Part shown: positions 2,104 to 64,000 of the stretch, in pieces
Layout of the letters: every line of letters begins with the position of its first letter
How positions within the stretch are numbered: the stretch's first letter is position 1
Assembly: GCA_038496445.1 (NCBI GenBank)
Contig: JALMLS010000287.1
Coordinates: 152,347 to 216,346, forward strand
Direction: 5' to 3'
Source of the DNA: Trichosphaerium sp. ATCC 40318
Lineage: Eukaryota > Protista > Tubulinea
DNA length: 64,000 nucleotides
Made by a program: the position numbers and the translations under genes
The notes under the pieces: generated by a model
What the model was told of the DNA's origin: nothing
Seen by the model: only the letters and a program-made list of their open reading frames with translations
The model's database searches: none

Positions 2104-5100
2104 TTATGTTTTATTACGGTCTGGCTTTAACCGCTTAGAAGGAGGTGGTGCGCCATTCTCATTTACGTCATTAATATCATTTATACTTGATGAAATCTCA
2201 GTTGATTTTCGCTTTTTCATATTCACTTCACCAACGTGAACTTCCTTCTTTTCTCCGTCTGGAGTGAAATCCTCATCATCAGAATCAGAGTCACCATATG
2301 CAACAAGATTTCCTAGTATACTAGGTTTACTAGCATTATCTCTAACCTCAGGTTCAAAAGAATCAGGAGGTGTAGCATCATCATCATCGTCATCGTCTCG
2401 ATCAAAAAATTTATCATCTTCATCAATATCCCAACTTGGCTGTTTTTTACCTCCTCTATCTTTAAACGAACTAGAACAAGACGTCAGACATTTCACCACA
2501 GTATCAAGAACAGGTCTAGTACACACGTTGGCCCAAAAAAAAAAACAAGACGAGAAAAGCGTAAAAAGCCACAAGGCTGAAAAAAGAACAAAAAATTGAC
2601 AAAAAAAAAAAAGAACATCGTACGTTGAGGTTCCTTCCATTTTGTTTTTATCATACTCATTCTGTTCATAACGCGCTTTAAGTGACTTGAAAGTAGAAAC
2701 ATAATCCACATGCTCTAACTTTGATCCAAAGTTTTCAATGACATGTTTAACAAGTGGTTTGTTATTACTCTAAAAAAAAAGAACAATGAGTACATTGAAA
2801 CGAAATTACTAACAACAGATGGTCGATCTTGTGTTGGACGTCATATTGATTTTAAAGGGTTGATATTAACATGTACACATACCTTTTTAATATGCTCAAA
2901 TAACTCCAAAATAGCTGAGTTTAGAAGGTTGTATTTTGATCCGTTTGCAATAAATAAGTCCACAATAGGTGCGAACAAGTTCATTTTCATGATATGATTA
3001 CTATAATACTTATCTGTCTCATGGACTATAGCTCGGAAAAACCGAAGTGCAGCTAGAACAACAGAGTAAGTACAACCCCAACAGGTAGTTATGAATAAAA
3101 AAATTAACAAATAGGAGAACTGTGAATCGTACACAAAATAAGGAATTTCTCGCGACTACCAACAAGTACTATGACTTTGGAGGGAATGTTTTTTCCCAGT
3201 AGGTATTGCTTAACACGATAATCATGTCTACGCACAAGATGCGTGAGTAAGTCTAGTGTTAGGTTCTTAGAGAGACCTTCAGCTTCAGAATGAACACCAC
3301 CTACAAAAACAAGATTAACAAAACAAAGGTAAAACCAGGGTCTTTCGACCACAACACAAAAAAACACCGCTGTACGTACCAGGAGGGAGTGCTCGCAGTA
3401 TTGGAGCAATAACAAATTTCATGTACATCGTGTAAAACTTATCCACAAAGTCTTGGTTACCGTCATAGGCCTAAAGTAATCAATCAATAAAAATATGTCA
3501 AAAAAAAAAAAAACTTCGAACTCACCTCTTCGTTAGCATCAGCAGCGTCAATGATTAATTTAATTACATCGCTGATAAGGATCTTAACACCACTCTCTGG
3601 GTCTTTATCGAGACACTCGATCAATATATACAAGAGAGATCCCTCTACAAAGAAACAGTAAGAATCATTTATTACAATAATTTTAGGGAAAAAAAACGTA
3701 CCAGGCGTTGATTCCGCCTTGTGGTGATTAGAAATATGCGTCCTTATAAGAGTTGAATCACTTTCGATGCTATGCGACATAATCTCAATACTAAACGGAG
3801 GTAAGAACACGTTCCATCCATGTATTCAATAAACAACAAGAAAACAGAAAAACTTGTGCAGCATCTAGAAAGCGCTGCTACAAATCTCCTTTTATGAGAA
3901 CGCACCTGTTTAATCGCACAGATTTATCTGGGTTCTGTAAAGTTTTAGCCAATACGTCGTATAAACCACGATCATTCAAGGAGCTAAAAATAAATGAGTT
4001 AACAATATGTTAAGTGATACAACATACCGATAAAAGGCAGTAATATTACGGAGTTCAAGAGTCTTTACTAAATCACATAGACTCTGTAAGAGCTTCATCA
4101 AATCAATCATTTTATCCTGTGGTGTAGACGATGATTTTATACGAACAAATCTCAAAAACAGTCAAGGAACAACACCACTGGTGCGTAAAAACAAAAAAAA
4201 TATTTGGAAAAAAAAAAGTGGATACAGTTTTGTCAAAAACGCAGCGTCTGTAGATAGCTTTGCAGCAATTTGACAATTGTTGATAATCACAAGAGAACCA
4301 AGTGTGCTAAAGGTCCCTTCATCTAATACACGGGCCAAAATAACATCCTAGAAACCAGTTAATTTATGCACAAAGCAAAAAAACAAATAAATTACACACC
4401 TTAATATATTGCAAGCGAAACGTTAAGTGGATTTGATTTACAATTTCTGGATCGCCAAAGTCAAGTACTTGGTTGAATTTTGCTTTATTTTTTATAAAGT
4501 CACGATGTCTTGTAGTTTTATTCAATTCAGGGTCATCTAGACATAAATAAGAAATCATTAGAAAAAAGAATTCTGAGAATTCTAATTAGAAAAGAGGAAA
4601 AAAACTGAAACTCCTTTTTAAGGCCACTCAGTAGGTTAAAAAAATATGCAGATATCGATTCGTACATTCTAGTGCACCAAGCAAGTCAAAAATATGATCA
4701 TCATCAAAGACAAAGTCGTAAATAGCTGGATTATTTAACAACACTAAAAAAAACAAAATATAAGCATAAATGTAATTCTTCGTGAACTACAAACTTTAAA
4801 ACTTTGACATACCGACACTAGTGAATATCTTAAAAATCCTACCAAGGTCCTCTTTAGCGTCAAGATCATCCAAAATGTGAAACAAATCAAACAATTTTTT
4901 CAAGTAATTACCGTCCTAAAATACACGTTAAACCAATAACAAACATTTCCCGAAGCGTAAAAATGATCAAAGCCAACAACAAAAATCCGATTAAATAATC
5001 GAGATTAACGAAATGCGATCGACCTCTACTTACGTTATCTAGTAGTGCTTTCGCAATCTTCTCCTTACGCATAGCGTATGTACCAGAGGATATTACTGTA

Positions 5101-14610: not shown

Positions 14611-17600
14611 TTACTTAAACCAAACGAATATATCTGGGTAATCATCAATATCTTCACCAGTCTTAACATCCTCGGCAGTAACCTCAACATTAAAGTAGCG
14701 TTGATTCTCCTTTAGTGTTATCTTAGCAATCTCAGGAACCAGCTCAGACAACCTTATTGCAATAAGCAACATAAAAAAAACAAAGAAAGAAAAAAAATAA
14801 TCAATGCTTACTTTCTTGGTAGTCTAGCTGCACCCTTCCTGCCAAAGCATGTGTAAATCAATGCAGTACCTACACCAACCATTTGGGCATCCATTTGATA
14901 TTTTTTCTAAAGCAAGTGTTAAACGTCAAACTCAATAAAAACCAAGTATTCAAAAAAATAAAAAACATACCTTGAGATAATTAAGGAACTGTTTCAAGGT
15001 TATATCACCTTGCTTGATATCAATGCGATCCCATAAGGTATAATGAGAGTCACGGAACTTGAGCTTCTCAGGAGCCAAAGGTTCAGATTGTTGGAAGACA
15101 GGTAATGCCAAATTGACAAAAGAGTTTCTGTATTGAAAGATTGTTTTATCTCCATGGAATAACTAAAAGAACCCTTCGTTAACACATCATTTCTTATACT
15201 GAGACTTACTTTATAGAACTCTAAGCATACTAAACCAGTAACCAAAGCTGTAGTAGTAATCATAGCTGGCATGATACGACCAGCAATAAGCTTGGATTGC
15301 AATTGTGTTACCTTTTTTTAACAAAACAGTTAGAAACTAACTTGAAGCTTGGGAGGTTATAAAGTGCATGATGCACGTAAAATTATACGTACAGGTTTGA
15401 TACCATAAGCAATTGCACGAAGATTAGAGGCAGCATGAATAAAATCGATGTGGAAGTTCGTGTCATCATCTTTTTCGAAATCGACTGGGTTAGTTCTGTA
15501 CGTTGTTGAAGCTGGGTCAGGGAGCTCTTTCTCAATTCTAGCGATTTGTACATCATCGTCATCTGCAGCTTCTCTATATAGAGATTAAACGACGCTATTG
15601 CAACGCAAAAATAAAGAGTGTTGTACAAACTAGCATTGTAGTACACTCAAAAAGGGTTGACTTGGTGGTTTTTGCTATCTTTCAACGTACACTACTTTTT
15701 CAGTGACACTCTCGTCAGTTTCAATCTTTACACCAACTTTTGGTTTCCATGCAGGAACAGATACAGAAGCAGCAGCCTTTGCAATACTAGCAGCTTGAGA
15801 CTCAAAGTCTGAAGGCTTAAACTCAGAGGAAATGATGTTTAGCGTGTAAGCACGCAAGAAAGCTGCTGATACAACAAACTGAGCATGTATAGGATCATTA
15901 GGATCGAATTCTATTGCCTTTGGTGGTCTCTTTGAACCAGACCAGAAAGGTGCTAAGAAATTATTAAGTAAAATGAATAAACACGTGAAAATACACGTGA
16001 CACGTGACAGGGCAAAAAAAGTCCAAATATGTTTGTGATGTACGTACCACCATGTGAGTCAACGTAATCCAATGGGAAATTATACAAGAGTTGTTTATGG
16101 TTCCAGTTGAATCTTTTTTGGAATTCGAGTCTAGCCCAAGCGATACAATCTTGGAACTCTAATTGACGCTCCATTAAGCAATCTTTGATGATTTTCAAGG
16201 TAGGTAACTTGAGATTTGGGCTCACAGTCTTTAACAAAAAGTCAAAATTTGGTTGGTTAAAAAAAAGGCAACTCACAGAAAGGTATCCAGGTTGCTCCAA
16301 GTAAGAGTTTGTGATGTCTGGATTCTTTACGAAGTGTCCTTCAAAGCAATCCTCCCTGCAAAAAAGTTAACTACTCACTCCTTTCCGTAAAGAGTGCAAA
16401 TTTTCGAGTGGAAAAAAAAGTACCTAGCCCATTGCAAGCAATGTTCAATGTTGTTTGGGAAGGAGTGTAATAAGCAAATAGGTGTCTCCTTTGCTGGTGG
16501 ATCAGTCGAAGATCCGTACGACTCTGTGAGATATGGTACAATAACTTGTACATTACCCTTGGATCCAAGTGTACCGGAATCGACAAGTGGCTTTCTACAG
16601 GGTGAATAAGTATTTTGAAACATAAAAATAGGTTTTCTACGATTATTGCGTACCTGAAGAATACACATCGCCTGTCAATATAGAGACGAGCTTGTACGTT
16701 ATCTACAGCATTGGCAACACCGTCGAGTTTCTCCCAAAACTCATCATGAAAGACATTTTCAGTCGAAGGTGCAACCTTTGTAGCAAGCGCTTCAATGTTC
16801 AATTCAGGGTTCATCTTCTTAACAGCAGCACAAGCTGTATTCGATTTCAATTTCTAGCACATGTATAAGCACACACAACCGATTAAAAAATAATCATTCT
16901 AAGCTTACTGTTACATCCCAACTGCGGTACAAGAACTGTCTGTTCAAGTTGGAAATTTCAATAGTGTCCATATCAGTAACTGTTACTTTTCCTTTCGGAC
17001 CTTGAGCCTTGTTAGTAACCACTACAACATAATACCAAGTATGATAGTGAACGCACCACAACCAATACCCATCATTGCAAAGTTCTTAAGCATCTCACAA
17101 CCAATTGCACCAGCACCAACTACAAAGTAGTTCAAGTTTAAGATTTTTTGGTTATACTCATTTCCGAAAACAGCTATTTGACCGTCGTAGCGTGTGTTAC
17201 GCTAGAAATATCAGTAACGGTAAATGCGTGTTTAAACATACTGGTTTAGCGTCTTCCTCAGTGATATCTTCAGTAGGGAGGCACTCGAGGTTTTCAGAGA
17301 ACAAAAATTGGTTGATAGGTGTAAACTTATTTGTAGTAGCTTTGAGAACTTCTTGGGCTACAATACCACCAATAGATGCGGCCATTGGGTTCAAAGAACC
17401 TGCAGCAGTTTTTGCAAGATCCATGACAACCTTTGACAAAGACCTTTTAGTCTCACCATCAGCCTAAACAATCACATTAGTAACCATGCGTTGCACCAAA
17501 AATAGTTGAAGGAAAAGAATACTGTATAAACCACGCACCACTGGAGATTCAGTAAAGTCCTTGTCAGTATAACGCTCATCTTCTGGGAGAGCTTCATTCA

Positions 17601-23924: not shown

Positions 23925-24361
23925 AATTACAACTACAATAACGTAAATAATGGTTGAGATAACAGAAGGATAACATACTGCTTTCGGGTTTTTGGCTAAT
24001 TAAACGGGTTTATATGACCTTTCCTTGACTGCTGTCGTTGCCAACCTGCGCAGGATTTCCTCATAAAAACTGACCGACGCCACTCAATGTGATCGCTACA
24101 ACGTGGTACATTCGTAGTGCTTGTGCGATACAAGCATATTTGTACTAAGGTAATCGTGTTCGTTGTCAATGGAAACAACACGTGATTTCTTTTGAAGTTC
24201 TAGATACATTCGATTTTCAACAAAATTCTATTTTCCGTTTGATTCAAATGTAATGTTTTTGATTACAAAGGGATTGATACTATCTCATCATTTGTATATT
24301 TTTTTTCTATTTCTTATGGTACACTCTCTACACTCAAATGACAAAAAAAAAAAAAAAAAGT

Positions 24362-31499: not shown

Positions 31500-34400
31500 A
31501 TGATTAAAAAACGCCACAATACGCGTAAATGCGATGATTCCCCCAGTTTTGCGACTAGGTACACTTTTTATGAAATTGCTGTTATAATGACGACCAATTA
31601 GCTTATTAATTGAGCTGCTCAAGAAGTTAAAGGACTTGGCGTCTGTTTTAGCTCAATTTAGTGCAGTGCCGGGTTCTTTACAAGGTACAAACTTAAAAGA
31701 AGTAAAAAAAACTAGTGCAGATGCGTTGAAAGTATACAGAGACTACACCGAGGTAATCACGGAATTCCCGAGCGATTGTATTGTTTTTTTTATGCCCCTT
31801 TTTAGAATGTTCGCCACTATTTTGATCAACATACCATTCTACGCGATAAAACAAACAGTCTGGGGGTAGTCCTAACAAGTGTTATTCGTTGCTTCATCAT
31901 CTCCATCAATGAGCCAAATAACTACGAGATTCTAGATAAAATTGATTTGAAACAATTGGTAGTACGTGTAAAGGATATTAATCAGTATTGGTGCGCGTCA
32001 TTTCCCTTTTATTATTTTTTTTTTTTTTTTTCAATTTTTTATTTTGTTTTTGCTTGGCTCTATTCTCATCTCATTCGCTCCGTAGGCAAACAGAAATTGC
32101 TCCAGAAATACGAGAGGCACGCAGGAAAAAGAGAATGGCAAAAGCGCCTCCTACAAAGATCAGAAGATCTTGTAGTGCTGGTGGTACGCTGTTTTTCGAA
32201 CTTACCGAAAATTTGACACATGTCAATCATTTTTTTTTACCAAACCGTTTAATCATTTCCTTTTATAGCCATGCAAAGAATGTATAAATCTTCCGGTCCA
32301 GTAATGCTCATATCGCAATCCTCCCCATTTAAAACACGTGATTTTATAGCCGCTTCTTCGCCCAGTACTTTACGGCCTGTTACCCCTAACCCGCCGTCAA
32401 CCGCTGTCCCTATTCCACGTATCACACCCCCTAAACCACCCAATACAAAGCCTCCTAGTGAAACCCCACCAATTGATACGACTCACATCACACGAATCAC
32501 TTCAATACGTGAGTGTTACTCGGTGTATTTTATTGTTCAAAAAATTTTCAAACTGAACTAAAATAACGTTTATAGGTTCTCAATCTCACTCAAGTGTATC
32601 TTCAAGCGACGATGAGGGATCTATGGATAAACGACCAACTTCACGCAGTTCTTCATATGCCTCAACCGCTTTACCACCTTTACCTGCGCGGCCTTCTCGA
32701 CCTCCTCCTCAATTACCTACACTACCCATACCAGCGTCGCCTGAACAACTTCGAAACTACGTTAGAGATATGAGAGAAATGTACGTTTACTCTGTATTTA
32801 AAGAAGAATTTTTATTTACGTTATAACAAACATCTACTCTGTATTACGCTGAATGTAAAGTGAAAACAGTAAAATGTACACTGTTTTTTTTTTTTTTTGA
32901 CATTTCTAATGCTATTTGCCAAAAGGATAACAAAGAAGGCATTTACATCAGAAGCACAACGCCGTAAGGCGATTACGCAATTACGCCAAGCCATCAAGAA
33001 AATTATTGCGCTCAACAATGAGCAAGTAGTAGCACCACAAGTACCAAAGTTAAAGCCTCAAGCTGCGGAAAAAGATGACCACACTAGATCTGCACGATCA
33101 AAGACACACGTGCGTATTATTTAAAAATATGTTTGTTTTGTGTTGACGCTTTTAAAGAGCCCACAAAATTCAGCTACAAATTTTCATCAAAGGAAAAAAT
33201 CATCAAGTTTTTCGTCTGGTCAGAGTGATTCGTTTTCGAGAGCGACTGGCGATAAAGTACATAGAAGTTTGCATGAACCAGATAAAAATGCTGTGGCAGT
33301 GCCTGTTGAGCAACTTACAGCAGAACCTTCTAAAGTAGGACCTAGTAGACGAGCTCAAATTAAATCAACAGCTTTCAGCAATTTTAAAGATTTATTGGCA
33401 CAAACAGAACTAGGTCTTGTACAACAGTCTAGCCCTGTTATGAGTCCGGTCGTTAGTCCTCGAGAAATGCCTACTCCTAGTATTGTAATGAGAGATTTCG
33501 GGAAAATAGAGACATTCTTGGACAAAGAGTTTGAAGAAAAGCCATCCCAGAGAAGGTAAAACTTACTGTTAATCAAGTATTTACTAATTCGAATGGTTCA
33601 GGTCTAAAAGATTAACACGTACTCTAAGCGCTGGTAGTAATATGCTAGATAAAACATGGGCACCAAGACGTAAATATTTTGGCGCTATAGATGATAATGA
33701 AGACTCTATAATGGAGGATTCTATGACAGAAGAAGAAATCAGGCAGCAATCGCTTTGGATGCCAATTTCTGCAAGTGTTGTAGCAAAGCCAAAGCAAATG
33801 TCCACGTATTCACTAGCTGGAAAGTCTCGCGTTACATCTAGTATGAGAGATAAAAGTGTGATGGAGCTAGTGGGTACCGAAGAAACCTACGTTGAAGGGT
33901 TGAAAGTTATTGTTGAGGTAATTTTTTGTTCAGCAGTTTTCTCTTTTCTTACTTGGTTTGTTTCCTTTAGTTTTTCTTGAAACCACTTAACAAAGAGCTC
34001 AAGAATGCCAAAGAATTTGGTGTTGAACCGCTATTACCTCAAGAAGATGTTGCAAAGATATTCTTTCTCATTGAAGAAATTTTAGCATTGCATGCTCCGT
34101 TTTTATCAAAATTAAGAAAATCTGTTGTGAAAGACTCTGTAGGTAAACCTATGCTTAAACTGGTACGTTATTAGATATATACAAACTTGTATTTGATTGC
34201 ATGAAGCCATATGCTGAAAGTTATTGATCAGATTAATCTTATTTTTGTTATAGATTCCTAAGCTTAAAAAATACGCCGAGTATGCTCAAAACTACAACGC
34301 AGCAGTAAAATGTGTTACAAAAAATCTTGAAGAGAGAACAAGGTTTAGGAATTACTATGATAGCATAATGAAACTACCACGTGTCGCAGGTGCGTAGATA

Positions 34401-35489: not shown

Positions 35490-35781
35490 GTTACAATGTT
35501 TGTGGTCGCTGTAAGAATGTAACTATTTGGCTCAATAAAACCTCAGTAACAGATGAAAGTGTTGCACTTGCTGGAGTTCATAATATACACCTTGATAACA
35601 CTTCAGTAACTGATGAAGGTGTTAAAGCACTTGCTGGCGTTCATACTATTTACCTCAATAACACTTCAGTAACTGACGAAGGTATTAAAGCGCTTGTTGG
35701 GGCGTATGTATTTTAGCTTTTAAAACTTGCGTAACAAGAGAGTGGGCTGAAGCTTTAGAGGGGACACAGGTGATTATGTAA
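35490..35781 (+). pseudogene. Degraded LRR relic paralogous to the 39513-41174 gene
   Basis: TSVTDEGVKALAGVHTIYLNNTSVTDEGIKALVG followed by a stop and frameshift; no F-box. Confidence 0.85.
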
Positions 35782-39512: not shown

Positions 39513-41174
39513 ATGAACAAAAACACTGCATTCTTTGATGAGGTTCCAGTGGAAATCATTGTTCATATTCTCCAGTCCCTTTCACCGTTATATATGCGGT
39601 TCGTTGTACACACATCTAAATTATTAGCCACAATTGCAATACAATTCTTAGGATATAAAGACGTAAGAAATATCGTCATTAAAACTTCAGAGAGGCTCGA
39701 AAAACTATACAGCGAAGCACCACACCTAATCAAAACGAATAAGATTACTCTCATGTTCCCTTTGAAACAACAACATTTACAGTACTTAAAAAAAGCTCAA
39801 GAACTAAAACTGTATGGGCTAGTAGATGTTGATTTTACAGGCTTTCAGTATGGCGAAAGCATAGACTTTAGCTGTTGTAGTCGTATTGCTGTAACAGATA
39901 CTCATCTTAAACAACTAGCTGGGATACATAAAATCATACTACAGGGTAAAAAAGTTACAAGTGAAGGTACAAGAGCATTGGCTGGCATTCATACAATCGA
40001 TCTAAGCAAATGCGGACTTGTAACAGACGATGGCATTAAAGCATTGGCGGGCGTTCATACTATCAATCTGCATAGTACTACAGTGACAAATGATTGTGTT
40101 AAGGCTTTGTCTGGAGTTCATACAATTAATTTAACTAATTGTAGACGTGTTACAGACGATGGGTTCAAGGCGTTAGTTGGAGTGCACTCTGCTGGTTTAA
40201 GCAGTACAGAAGTGACAGATGAAGCTGTTATAGCTTTAGCAGGTGTTCATTCTATACGCCTAAACCGCACACAAGTGACAGATAATGGTATTAAAGCGTT
40301 AGCTGGAGTATACGCAATTTTTCTTGATGACACTGACATTACTAATGTTGGTATTAAAGCACTTGCTGGCGTTCATACCATTAGTATTGTTAATACAGGT
40401 GTAACTGATGAGGGTGTTAGAACGTTGGCAGGAGTTCATTCCATTGATTTAAGCTATTGTCGATATATACGAGATGGTAGTCTTAAAGCTGTAGCAGGAG
40501 TTCACACTATTAAACTAAGATCAACTCATGTTACAGATGATGGCATTAAAGCGCTGGCTGGCGTTCACACAATTGATCTTGGTACGACAGGTACAACCGA
40601 TGATGGAGTCAAAGCATTGGCTGGAGTTTACTCAATTGATTTGCAAAATTGCAAGAGTGTAACGGACAATGGTATTTCAGCTTTAGCTGGTGTTCATACA
40701 ATATATCTTGAGAATACAAATGTAACAGACGTGGGTGTCAAATCACTGGCAGGAGTACATGAAATATCTCTTTGCAGAACAACAGTTACAGACGATAGTC
40801 TAACAACATTGGCTGGTGTTCATACAATATATCTTGAGCACACAAAAGTCACAGACATGGGAATCAAAGCGCTAGCTGGAGTATACACAATTTTTCTTGA
40901 TGACACTGACATTACTAATGTTGGTATTAAAGCACTTGCTGGCGTTCATAAAATTAGTTTGCGGAACACTTCAGTAACTGATGAGGGTGTTAAAGCACTG
41001 GCAGGTGTACATGCGATTGATTTACACAAAACAAATGTTACAGATGATGGTATTACAGCATTGATAGGAGTACATATAATTAACATTGAACATACTAAAG
41101 TAACAGCTAAGGGCAAAGAAGCGCTAGGCATTGTTCAACATGTACGATGGTTGTCCTATTCTTGTCCCACATAA
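39513..41174 (+). CDS. Intronless F-box + leucine-rich-repeat protein (553 aa)
   Basis: FDEVPVEIIVHILQSL F-box; many LAGVHTIxLxxTxVTDxGIKA repeats. Confidence 0.92.
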   Translation: MNKNTAFFDEVPVEIIVHILQSLSPLYMRFVVHTSKLLATIAIQFLGYKDVRNIVIKTSERLEKLYSEAPHLIKTNKITLMFPLKQQHLQYLKKAQELKLYGLVDVDFTGFQYGESIDFSCCSRIAVTDTHLKQLAGIHKIILQGKKVTSEGTRALAGIHTIDLSKCGLVTDDGIKALAGVHTINLHSTTVTNDCVKALSGVHTINLTNCRRVTDDGFKALVGVHSAGLSSTEVTDEAVIALAGVHSIRLNRTQVTDNGIKALAGVYAIFLDDTDITNVGIKALAGVHTISIVNTGVTDEGVRTLAGVHSIDLSYCRYIRDGSLKAVAGVHTIKLRSTHVTDDGIKALAGVHTIDLGTTGTTDDGVKALAGVYSIDLQNCKSVTDNGISALAGVHTIYLENTNVTDVGVKSLAGVHEISLCRTTVTDDSLTTLAGVHTIYLEHTKVTDMGIKALAGVYTIFLDDTDITNVGIKALAGVHKISLRNTSVTDEGVKALAGVHAIDLHKTNVTDDGITALIGVHIINIEHTKVTAKGKEALGIVQHVRWLSYSCPT

Positions 41175-60566: not shown

Positions 60567-60615
60567 CCCTAGCCCTAATGTAAATTAGGGTTTGGCTATA
60601 GGGTTAGGGTTTAGG
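60567..60615. repeat. Interstitial telomere-like hexamers in both orientations
   Basis: CCCTAG CCCTAA ... TTAGGG ... TAGGG TTAGGG TTTAGG. Confidence 0.65.
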
Positions 60616-60931
60616 AGTATGTACCAACCGTATTTTTTTGTACACTACTCTACCCTGTTGTAAAATTTTTTCGATTTTTTTGGCTTTTTTTTATGTTTTT
60701 TGCACATACAATCTCCCTGTAGGGTTACAGCAAGATAGGGTTTTTTACAAACCCAAGACCTCATCAACAATCTTGCAAACTGTCAAATTCTCATTTTTTT
60801 CTTACTTTTTTAAAACAGGCGAAATTTCCGGTGCACATTTCGAAACACGAAATTTTCCTGTCTATTTCTCAACGCAATTATTGGGGGAAAAAAAGCCTCA
60901 TTTTACTTTTTTGACTTTTCATAAATCAAGG

Positions 60932-62564
60932 ATGAGCTCAGATGAAGACCTCTCTCTCATAAACATTGAGTTTTCTGATGAGGATGAGCCCTCCAAAGAA
61001 GCTGATGGTAAGCCCAGGCTCAGGAGAAAGAGAGTACTAGGTACTAACCTCTTTTTTACTCTTTGTTTTTTTTAAAAACCCCTTTATTAGTCTTATTTTA
61101 ATTTTTAAAGACTAATAAAGGGGGTTTTTTTGCTTTTAAATGGTTTTTTCAAAACCCCTAATTTTTCAAATAAATTTCGAAAAAAAATGACGGTTTTTGT
61201 ACACGGTTTTCATGTGTACGATTTTTCCGTTTACCATGCGGTTTTTTTGCATGGTAGAACCAAACCCAAACGAGGGTTTCGTAACACGCAGAACGCGTGT
61301 GCGTTGTTTTTTCGTTTGGTTTTGGTTCACACTGTTTTATTTTGCTTCAATTTTCAACAGCGAGCTCGTCGCGGTATTAGTACACGTATATTGCGTGTTC
61401 GCATGTCGCGCTAGTTGGCGGTTGGTTTTGGTACACAATTTAATTGTGTACTTTTTTTTTTAATATTTTTTTGTTGTTTTGCTTTTTTTTACAGACTGCG
61501 AGCTCGCCGTACGATTATAAACACGCTTTTTACGTGTTCGTACATGGCCTCGAGCTCGCGGTCGGTTTTCGTACACATAAAAAGTGTGTACTTTTTTAAA
61601 AACCGTTTTTTTTGAAAGTCTTGCTTTATAACTGACTGCAAGCTTGGTATACGGTATACAACACATGTTTATTGTGTTCGTACCTGACCTCGAGCTCGCG
61701 GTCGGTTTTTGTACACATAAAAAGTGTGTACTTTTTTAAAAACCGTTTTTTTTTTTTGAAAGTCTTGCTTTATAACTGACTGCAAGCTTGCCGTTGTGTA
61801 CGTAACACGTTTTTAATGTGTTCGTTTCCGACCGCGAGCTCGAGGTCATATTTTCCACACAGAAAAAACGTGTTTGTATATTTATTTAATGTGCCATCTT
61901 CTAATACTCTTTTTAGCTCCAACAAGCCCTGGTTGGATGATTGTGAGTACCCATGGAAACCACAACACTGAAACAAAAATTGTGGGTACTCTCATTGGAG
62001 AACACAGAGATGTTATCTTTGGTTTTGAGTAAGTTGGTTGTTTTTTTTTTTTTTTACCCATTTAATTTCGCGTTCGACGCAACACGCGCGGCGCATGTTC
62101 GTAAACGTAGCTGTCATTTTATTTTTTTTTTATTTTTTGTTTTTTTTTTTAATTTTTAATTCATTTCAACTAATTTATCTATGTAGAGGTGTTATCATAG
62201 CCAACCAGTTGGTTTATGCTAAAACCATGCCCATCAAGAGGATGAAGAGATGCCTAAATGGGTTTTTTGCTGCCAGCTTTGATAATGTGTTGGAGTCTCA
62301 AATAACTCCTAACAACAAGCTGAAGGCAGCATTCAAGGTACGTTTTCCGATACATACACGCGCGGGCCGTGTTCGTTTTATTTCGTTTTTTTTTTTTTTT
62401 TTTTTTTTGTTTTTTTTTTTTTTTTGATTTTTTTTTTTTTGATTTTTTTGATTTTTTTTCCTAAAGTATTCATAACACAGTTTTCATGTGTCGAACGTGT
62501 GACCGCGAGCTCGCGGTCGTGTACGAACACTTAAATATCCTGTTGTAAAATCGTTGGCTTTTTG

Positions 62565-62597
<33 letters not shown>

Positions 62598-63964
62598 TTT
62601 GTTTCTTTAGGAGAGATTTCCATTTGTTGAAGGAGTAGACCAACTGCAGAAGTTTATCAAAGACGTCAGAAAAATCTACTCCTCGGACGAAGAAAAGTGG
62701 TGGAAGCCGATGCACTTCGAAGGCAACTACACCAGAGATTACAAGGAGCACGAACCCATGCCGAGAGAACACGGAGATGAGGAATCGGAGGTAGAGGAGA
62801 AAGAAAAAAATAGATGGATTATAAGCTGCAAGTGGAGACAGTTGTATTGGCAGGTGCTACTCTGGACTGGCATATTCTACACAGCCATGGGACTTCATGT
62901 CACAGATTCTTGGTACTACATTGCCCTTCTTTTGGTCCATTTTAGAGATTCCTTGAGCTTTGGCAATGATTCAGATTTCCATCTCTTTGTGGAGTAAGTA
63001 ACAATTTTCGCGATATTTTTAACACGCGTTCTACATGTTCGAAAACGAACGTCGTCGTTTTTTTTTTTTTGTTTTTTTTTTTTTTTTTTTTTTTTATTTT
63101 TATTTTTTTTTTTTTTAACTTTTATGTAGCTACATGAAGACAGACACCAATAAATTGAATGGCTGCATCATAAAGCCATCAATACAAAAGGGCCTGTTAA
63201 GAGGGATTGCTGCCAACTCCATCAACAAGAAGTATCTGAGAGTGAAAAGCCCTCATTTTACAAAGGCCCCTTGGACATGTCACACATAGCTTGTTTTTGA
63301 ATGTCAGAGGAGTCAACCCCAGGAACATTATACAAAAGATGCCTATTTATGAAACCTTCACCAAAAGGTTTGTGCTTTGTCCTATGCCTATTGTTTGGTG
63401 TGATGAGTACAATGCAGACCCTATTGTTGGCTTTGGAGTTGGAGATGGAGCACACTGTCTTTTGACAGAGTTGGCGTACGTTCGCGAATATTTTCGAACA
63501 CGTTTTTTACGTGTCGGTCGACCGACCGCGAGCTCGCGGTCACGTTCGAACACGAGATTTTCCTGTTGTAAAAAATAACTCGAACGACGAACCTTTTTTT
63601 TGTTTTTTGTTTTTCTGGTTTTTTGCTTTTCCTTACCTTATTGTTCAATTGTTTCTTACTTGTTTGCCTCAGACAAAATGCAGCTACAACCTGCAAATTT
63701 GCAATCAAAAATGTGGAGTGGATAAATCCTTTCGCCAAGATGCAAGCGATAGCGATCTACTGCACCAAGATCAACTTTCTGCAAAGTCTGACCACTCCAG
63801 ACTCCAAGGTGGATCGCTACCGCCACCTGTTCAAAATGTGGTGCGACGACGCGGGCCAGGTCTTCGATTACCAAGCGGAGGCGGGAGATATAGGTAAGGT
63901 GAATTTTGCGATATGGGGAGCCAGCAGAGTCAAACCTCAGCTCAGTCCTGCTCAATGGAAAGAG
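60932..63964 (+). CDS. Orphan multi-exon protein, 3' partial; exons 60932-61040, 61917-62028, 62187-62337, 62611-62993, 63130-63475, 63673-63964
   Basis: All five introns are GT-AG and phase-compatible; one +1 frameshift in the A-run near 63245; no family recognised. Confidence 0.7.
61074..61129. repeat. Inverted repeat (16-bp perfect core, ~21-bp arms, 13-nt loop)
   Basis: AAAAACCCCTTTATTAGTCTT ... AAGACTAATAAAGGGGGTTTTT. Confidence 0.85.
61357..61875. repeat. About four tandem ~140-bp units built of palindromes and ACAC-N9-GTGT dyads
   Basis: Unit starts near 61357, 61495, 61634 and 61778; 61548-61645 is nearly identical to 61688-61790. Confidence 0.85.
62474..62544. repeat. 71-bp tripartite module: dyad - GACCGCGAGCTCGCGGTC - dyad
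   Basis: Perfect 18-bp palindrome at 62501-62518; dyads start at 62474 and 62526. Confidence 0.9.
63497..63567. repeat. 71-bp tripartite module: dyad - GACCGCGAGCTCGCGGTC - dyad
   Basis: Perfect 18-bp palindrome at 63524-63541; dyads start at 63497 and 63549. Confidence 0.9.
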
Positions 63965-64000
63965 GTGAGGGTTGTTTTTTTTTTTTATTTTATCTTTTTT

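Follow-up and report, generated by a model that had tools for sequence, protein, structure and literature searches.

A palindromic repeat shared by the introns of an orphan gene of Trichosphaerium sp. ATCC 40318: a possible sister-intron family

A stretch of 64,000 nucleotides of Trichosphaerium sp. ATCC 40318 (assembly GCA_038496445.1, contig JALMLS010000287.1, positions 152,347 to 216,346 of the forward strand), here called the window, carries at its right end a lineage-specific ('orphan') protein-coding gene (60932..64000, plus strand). All five complete introns of this gene, and two pieces of DNA upstream of its start codon, are homologous to one another through copies of a repeat in which a 17-bp ACAC/GTGT dyad and an 18-bp palindrome recur. 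Our preferred explanation, to which we give an about even chance, is that the introns represent a sister-intron (introner-like) family derived from a palindromic, probably once-mobile repeat, and that the conserved half-sites and palindrome are cis sites for its copying. The zone had previously been described in an initial annotation, made from the same DNA, as a helically phased code of putative protein-binding sites stored in spliceosomal introns, with origin, recombination, segregation/packaging or anti-silencing sites as candidate roles and baculovirus hr units among the analogues.

Occurrence of the dyad and the palindrome

Pattern scans of the window with ACAC-N9-VTGT gave 39 strand-hits, while 8.7 were expected and none of 100 shuffles reached this number. 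Between 60642 and 63566, 19 sites were found; they are the same as those listed in the initial annotation, whose coordinates begin one base before those of the present scan. The strict form ACAC-N9-GTGT occurred 13 times within 60600-63700 and only once in the remaining 60.6 kb. When spacer lengths from 0 to 20 were scanned, enrichment was observed for none except 9 nt; other 4-mer dyads with a 9-nt spacer were not enriched. Six copies of the 18-bp palindrome (at most three mismatches) were detected, with none expected, and all of them were located within 61494-63541. Five pairs of dyads lay exactly 52 bp apart, each around a palindrome copy with 0-2 mismatches. The 19 dyads, the five pairs and the palindrome were thus present where they had been reported.

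Under the present splice model, every dyad site of 60642-63566 is located either upstream of the gene or in introns 1-5, as the initial annotation had stated. Its further observation that exons contain no dyad is true in this model, but on its own has no evidential value, since chance alone would give only about 0.2 hits in the approximately 1.35 kb of exon.

Architecture of the repeat

The basic unit consists of a CG-rich palindrome, followed approximately 26 bp on (centre to centre) by the 17-bp ACAC/GTGT dyad and then by a T-rich tail. Intron 1 (61041..61916, plus strand, 876 nt) contains 10 dyads, several other hairpins and a tandem array (61491..61867) of about 2.4 copies with a period of 140-144 bp (Tandem Repeats Finder scores 403 and 416; top self-shifts 140 and 144). 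Each array unit is composed of a degenerate palindrome with its dyad, a palindrome with its dyad, and a T-rich tail. Shifting the array units by 52 nt against themselves left 27-28 of 52 positions identical; judged from this self-similarity, the palindrome-plus-dyad unit is directly duplicated within them, with a period of 52 bp. The distance had been taken for about five helical turns placing both dyads on one face of the DNA; since homologous copies inherit the 52-bp spacing, no selection for a helical face is needed, and the phasing code is not supported.

Five full modules of the order dyad, palindrome, dyad were identified by the scans and by an nhmmer profile. Three of them belong to the array, namely module 1 (61520..61590; two mismatches in the palindrome; nhmmer E = 4e-23 on the plus and 6e-17 on the minus strand), module 2 (61660..61730) and module 3 (61804..61874), the latter two with one mismatch each and found by both the dyad and palindrome scans and the profile. 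Module 4 in intron 3 (62474..62550) and module 5 in intron 5 (63497..63573; palindrome scan and nhmmer profile) have perfect palindromes and are 78% identical. Because modules 1 to 3 are copies repeated in tandem at distances of 140 and 144 bp, the five dyad pairs do not represent five independent events.

The five modules aligned at 76% mean column identity. Each is an imperfect palindrome of approximately 71 bp, in which 74% of cells pair about the axis, compared with 28-53% when the partners were slid, and pairing within its three local hairpins reaches 88%. In two modules the right dyad is the reverse complement of the left one at 15 of 17 positions; left spacers are T-rich (28/45 bases) and right spacers A-rich (25/45). 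The spacers are therefore related and not free, as had been claimed for them.

Copies of different ages coexist at the locus, with perfect palindromes in introns 3 and 5, palindromes with one or two mismatches in the array, and decayed ones at 61199-61454 and upstream of the gene. The older degenerate copies in intron 1 (61199..61454) have kept the dyads at 61201, 61284, 61382 and 61433, their palindromes are decayed, and weak nhmmer hits were obtained at 61329-61454 (E = 1e-4 to 5e-4). The dyad at 61284 is enclosed by a palindrome with 17-nt arms. By eye, the degenerate palindromes of the array (61629-61646 and 61773-61790) differ from the intact ones mainly by C-to-T and G-to-A changes at CpG, which hints at CpG decay in older copies of the palindrome.

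Homology between the introns

Introns 2 to 5 all lie on the plus strand and carry the repeat in short or long form. Intron 4 (62994..63129, 136 nt) has the short form, consisting of a small CG palindrome, the dyad at 63022 and T-runs, and is nearly all family sequence. Intron 5 (63476..63672, 197 nt) has the long form, with the small CG palindrome 5 nt past the donor, the full module and a T-rich tail. In both introns the small palindrome precedes the first dyad by approximately 20 bp (centre to centre, by eye). Intron 2 (62029..62186, 158 nt) shows the short form, one unit (dyad 62082) and then T-runs; by eye, a CG-rich stretch occupies the place of the small palindrome. Introns 2, 4 and 5 thus show the arrangement of the basic unit in shortened form. 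Intron 3 (62338..62610, 273 nt) contains a short-form unit (dyad 62356), T-runs, the full module and a further T-run.

Kinship was scored by local alignments of intron 5′ parts compared with shuffles. Intron 4 aligned with intron 5 at z = 7.9 (63007-63042 with 63481-63521), and intron 2 with introns 3 and 4 at z = 6.8 and 5.6, respectively. The strongest scores were obtained for intron 5, which aligned with the module of intron 3 at z = 20.7 and with the end of intron 1 at z = 15.4. Both upstream pieces aligned with the right part of the module: the first (60642..60701) comprises the right dyad and the module tail and is 72% identical to 62527-62586 (z = 8.2), and the second (60829..60861) comprises the right third of the module and aligns with 63537-63566 (z = 7.9). 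In introns 4 and 5 homology begins 5-13 nt past the donor and extends to the T-tract. Family copies thus make up nearly all sequence of introns 4 and 5 outside the T-runs, and a large part of introns 1-3. No repeats common to the exons were found, and duplication of exon-intron blocks is therefore excluded. An introner family has been defined as at least four introns of significant similarity with dissimilar flanking coding sequence (PMC9860276); the five introns, related at z = 5.6-20.7, come under this operational definition, with a scoring that differs from the BLAST criteria of that paper.

When both strands of the 64-kb window were searched, the module profile matched only 61199-63575, with hits on both strands. 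Within the window the motif is confined to this locus, at 60.6-63.6 kb.

Conservation of the half-sites and the palindrome

Conservation was distributed very unevenly over the five-module alignment. Invariant columns amounted to 30 of 34 in half-sites and palindrome, compared with 5 of 36 in spacers and linkers (Fisher p = 3e-10); by class, they numbered 15/16 in half-sites, 15/18 in the palindrome, 4/18 in spacers and 1/18 in linkers. The degenerate copies at 61199-61454 likewise retained good dyads despite their decayed palindromes. This unevenness makes the copies unlike uniformly decaying neutral DNA, and sequence-specific recognition of the half-sites and the palindrome may fairly be inferred from the alignment. 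The constraint that had been claimed for half-sites, palindrome and spacing is therefore supported. The stronger claim, that these are binding sites and not neutral repeat copies, stood in part: decay is not uniform and recognition is a reasonable conclusion, but the sites are homologous copies of a single repeat.

The core four pairs are the same throughout, and this constancy suggests that a specific sequence is recognised and not pairing alone. One position further inward the pair was G-C in nine cases and A-T in five, and three states were one-sided; this is weak evidence for pairing, because CpG decay on both arms could yield the same pattern.

Proposed origin of the introns

In the preferred explanation, dyads and palindromes would be parts of one lineage-specific palindromic DNA repeat. 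Duplication of its unit would have given rise to the module of dyad, palindrome and dyad with its 52-bp spacing, and the five sister introns would have arisen as the element was copied again and again, either into the gene or from one of its introns to another. The element might be tolerated in transcribed sequence because it brings or adjoins splice signals, namely its own T-tract and GTAYGT-type words, which recur inside the repeat. The invariant half-sites and the central palindrome would most likely be cis sites needed for copying, acting either as candidate binding sites of a dimeric transposase or recombinase or as formers of hairpins or cruciforms. From the sequence we infer the mobility of the element, the mode of its copying, and that it created introns rather than entering older ones.

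A bolder version, in which the module is the recognition architecture of a novel dimeric recombinase or transposase that copies the element, giving a new introner family that built every intron of a young gene, seems to us quite improbable. If it were true, the cis sites of a new introner family would be readable directly from the sequence. The origin of new spliceosomal introns is an open question, for which sister-intron families provide the best handle. Should the present family turn out to occur throughout the source genome, the conservation of its half-sites and palindrome would point to what the copying machinery recognises; if it were confined to one locus, it would be a local curiosity. 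Whichever explanation holds, exact, helical-looking spacing can come from simple duplication of a repeat unit.

Several observations weigh against a sister-intron family. The main weakness is that every copy visible in the 64-kb window lies in one gene; the module profile found no copy in other genes of the 60 kb upstream, and a pattern combining dyad and palindrome (23 fixed bases) had no hits in the Joint Genome Institute (JGI) metagenomes and none in the 2.9 million viral contigs of IMG/VR. Target-site duplications (TSDs) across the intron boundaries and inverted repeats at the intron ends were absent, the longest shared words being no better than those of shuffles, and by eye no flanking direct repeat was seen around modules 4 and 5. 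TSDs of the type left by miniature inverted-repeat transposable elements (MITEs), which the initial annotation had named as evidence against its own proposal, were accordingly found neither at the intron boundaries nor, by eye, at these two modules. The distance between module and donor varies from 18 to 160 nt, two copies lie upstream of the start codon, covariation among the five module sequences was not above that of shuffles, and no transposase was visible in 3.4 kb of the locus. Among known introner families, TSDs and/or terminal inverted repeats (TIRs) are present in approximately 59%, and are considered supportive but not required (PMC9860276).

Alternative explanations

The tandem array in intron 1 resembles a minisatellite as much as an insertion. 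The whole family could be a local repeat devoid of function, a palindrome-prone minisatellite spread by slippage, template switching and unequal exchange, which persists where it is harmless, in introns and in the upstream spacer. The period of 140-144 bp with its 52-bp sub-period, the nested palindromes of several unrelated sequences in intron 1, the restriction to one locus of the window and the lack of TSDs and TIRs would all be expected of such a repeat. Uniform neutral decay, however, does not predict the contrast between 30/34 and 5/36 invariant columns, and slippage alone does not explain copies in five introns between unique exons. We regard a minisatellite as unlikely, though slightly less so than the other alternatives.

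Alternatively, the 17-bp dyads and the palindrome could be binding sites of dimeric host proteins, clustered in the introns as enhancers or insulators and perhaps recruited from a repeat. The invariant half-sites, the fixed 9-nt spacing and the enrichment of a single 4-mer dyad are consistent with host regulatory sites, as are the copies in the promoter region, and the genome widely uses another short palindrome, CACGTG (37 occurrences in the window, 10.7 expected). Yet no such site was found at any other gene in 60 kb, spacers and flanks are homologous and mirrored instead of free, and duplication explains the spacing. On these grounds a regulatory function of this kind would have a low probability.

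Selection might also act on RNA, in that pre-mRNA hairpins of 70-80 nt would shorten unusually long introns for splicing or serve as small-RNA precursors. Hairpins derived from palindromic repeats act as small-RNA precursors elsewhere. As RNA, the modules show good folding energies (-24 to -29 kcal/mol, z = -5.6 to -1.4), and all copies within the gene are located in sense-strand introns. On the other hand, G.T and A.C mismatches in the stems showed no strand bias and the minus strand folded about as well as the plus strand, and therefore no sign of selection on the sense RNA was obtained; it was on account of the unbiased wobble mismatches that such selection was rejected. It is moreover the stem sequence itself that is invariant, and not pairing alone, and copies are also found upstream of the gene. 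Rfam 15 gave no matches at the gathering score and a tRNA scan was negative. A role at the RNA level is in our judgement rather improbable.

The proposal of the initial annotation, that the modules serve an integrated virus- or plasmid-like element in cis, as origins, enhancers, packaging sites or resolution sites, is very improbable: repeated imperfect palindromes with conserved half-sites, a gene without detectable relatives and a telomere-like inverted repeat (60570-60615) just 5′ of the zone would fit it, but codon usage of the exons equals that of neighbouring cell genes, GC and CpG are as in the rest of the window (CpG observed/expected approximately 0.9), the introns carry the usual donor, T-tract and acceptor of the genome, no viral family was hit, the module is absent from the IMG/VR contigs, and searches of the 3.4 kb of the locus that lie in the window gave no sign of a virus, recombinase or transposase.

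Comparison with known systems

The introners of Micromonas, Aureococcus, dinoflagellates and ascomycetes are, like the present introns, mutually similar introns between unrelated exons and longer than is usual in their genome, and many of the known families are non-coding and palindromic or provided with inverted repeats (PMC9860276). Unlike these, the present copies are all located in one gene of the window, lack TSDs and TIRs at the intron ends, and contain the symmetric module internally, sometimes more than once per intron. A close precedent in form is provided by the symmetrical sister (stw)introns of Hypoxylaceae (Hypoxylon). This small family has a short palindrome at its centre, imperfect inverted repeats about 73% alike on either side of it and no flanking duplications; older copies have lost symmetry, and long forms have given rise to short ones (PMC8469720). 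There, however, the inverted repeats reach the intron termini and copies occur in many genes, whereas the present symmetry covers approximately 71 bp inside the intron and is accompanied by additional sub-palindromes (the dyads) and a T-rich tail. Introners of Amoebophrya are also repeated introns with inverted repeats able to form hairpins, and favour poorly conserved genes (PMC7789003). They differ in having inverted repeats of 8-20 nt at both intron ends, direct repeats of 3-5 nt across the boundaries and mostly non-canonical splice sites, while the present introns are canonical GT..AG introns without such repeats.

MITEs and foldback elements are likewise short palindromic elements without coding capacity, in which recognition sites are conserved and the interior varies, and they are often found in introns and promoters. 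The present repeat, whose 71-bp module is 74% self-complementary, differs from them in having no TSD and no defined termini. Baculovirus hr regions are clusters of imperfect palindromes with a restriction-site core in repeat units measuring some 70 bp, to which a dimeric protein binds; they lie between genes of the viral genome and act with a viral transactivator. By contrast, the present repeats occupy spliceosomal introns, the codon usage of their gene is that of the host, and the 3.4 kb revealed no viral gene. Conserved half-sites at a fixed distance, with several sites in set order, are also known from the dyads of dimeric zinc-cluster type regulators and from the multi-subsite res sites of serine resolvases. 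Such sites are independent of one another and have unrelated flanks, and res adjoins the gene of its resolvase; at the present locus copying has passed on flanks, spacers and order alike, and a recombinase was not found in 60.3-64.0 kb.

The orphan gene and its surroundings

The gene has at least six exons and is cut off by the window end; it was delineated by joining open frames across GT..AG introns of consistent phase. A codon table derived from neighbouring genes with open reading frames or domain matches gave every exon a positive in-frame score, similar to the scores of control exons of neighbouring genes. Exon 5 contains one change of reading frame, which could be a sequencing or assembly error, a sign of a decaying gene or an unrecognised tiny intron. 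When each exon was searched alone, none matched Pfam or PHROGs; exons 4 and 6 had no significant match in the PDB, and exon 4 had no relatives among 1.84 billion protein representatives. As far as such exon-by-exon searches reach, the earlier designation of the gene as an orphan holds.

The splice sites are canonical, and donor, T-tract and acceptor follow the usual pattern of the genome. T-runs before acceptors were also observed in introns of other genes, those of the orphan gene being longer. Runs of 12-17 T were seen approximately 25 nt before likely acceptors at 2601-2612, 3500-3513, 24343-24359 and 32015-32031, read as A on the plus strand for minus-strand genes. Long T-tracts are thus a general intron habit of this genome. 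One neighbouring intron near 60.2 kb measures by eye about 50 nt, compared with 136-876 nt in the orphan gene. The donor of intron 1 lies in a tandem 7-mer duplication (61034-61047), so that splicing could start at either of two 5′ sites separated by 7 nt.

Intron 1 and the upstream spacer contain other strong hairpins that are unrelated to the ACAC dyad (61074-61128, 61232-61256, 60738-60754 and 61262-61279), one of them with 21-nt arms of 95% complementarity. A permissive Rfam scan gave only sub-threshold hits, which were located on an unrelated hairpin at 61029-61180. A search of IMG/VR with the 18-mer yielded six loci, all in phage coding DNA of 66-71% GC without dyads, and these were dismissed as chance matches. 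A hairpin-plus-flank pattern found two loci in metagenomes; both represent a single unrelated sequence in which the module is absent.

Just 5′ of the hairpin-rich zone, CCCTAA faces TTAGGG (TTTAGGG-type variants) at 60570-60615. This telomere-like inverted pair, which forms a hairpin, could mark an old chromosome end or an insertion boundary, or be a promoter element. CACGTG sites are often clustered (for example 64, 196, 858, 1008, 1392 and 15982-16006) and none lies inside 60.6-63.7 kb; CACGTG is probably a general promoter palindrome of this genome. A lone dyad at 54-70 overlaps one of these sites.

Domain matches elsewhere in the window were to ordinary cell genes, i.e. an LRR_6 protein, ThiF and an aldo-keto reductase, and kinase-, small-GTPase- and carboxypeptidase-like exons were recognised solely by reading the six-frame translation by eye. 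The LRR_6 protein, of 553 amino acids, is encoded by a single exon (39513-41174) with coding repeats of 63 nt, and related repeats are found 4 kb upstream (35528-35755). Its closest relatives are marine protist (MMETSP) transcripts with 47% identity.

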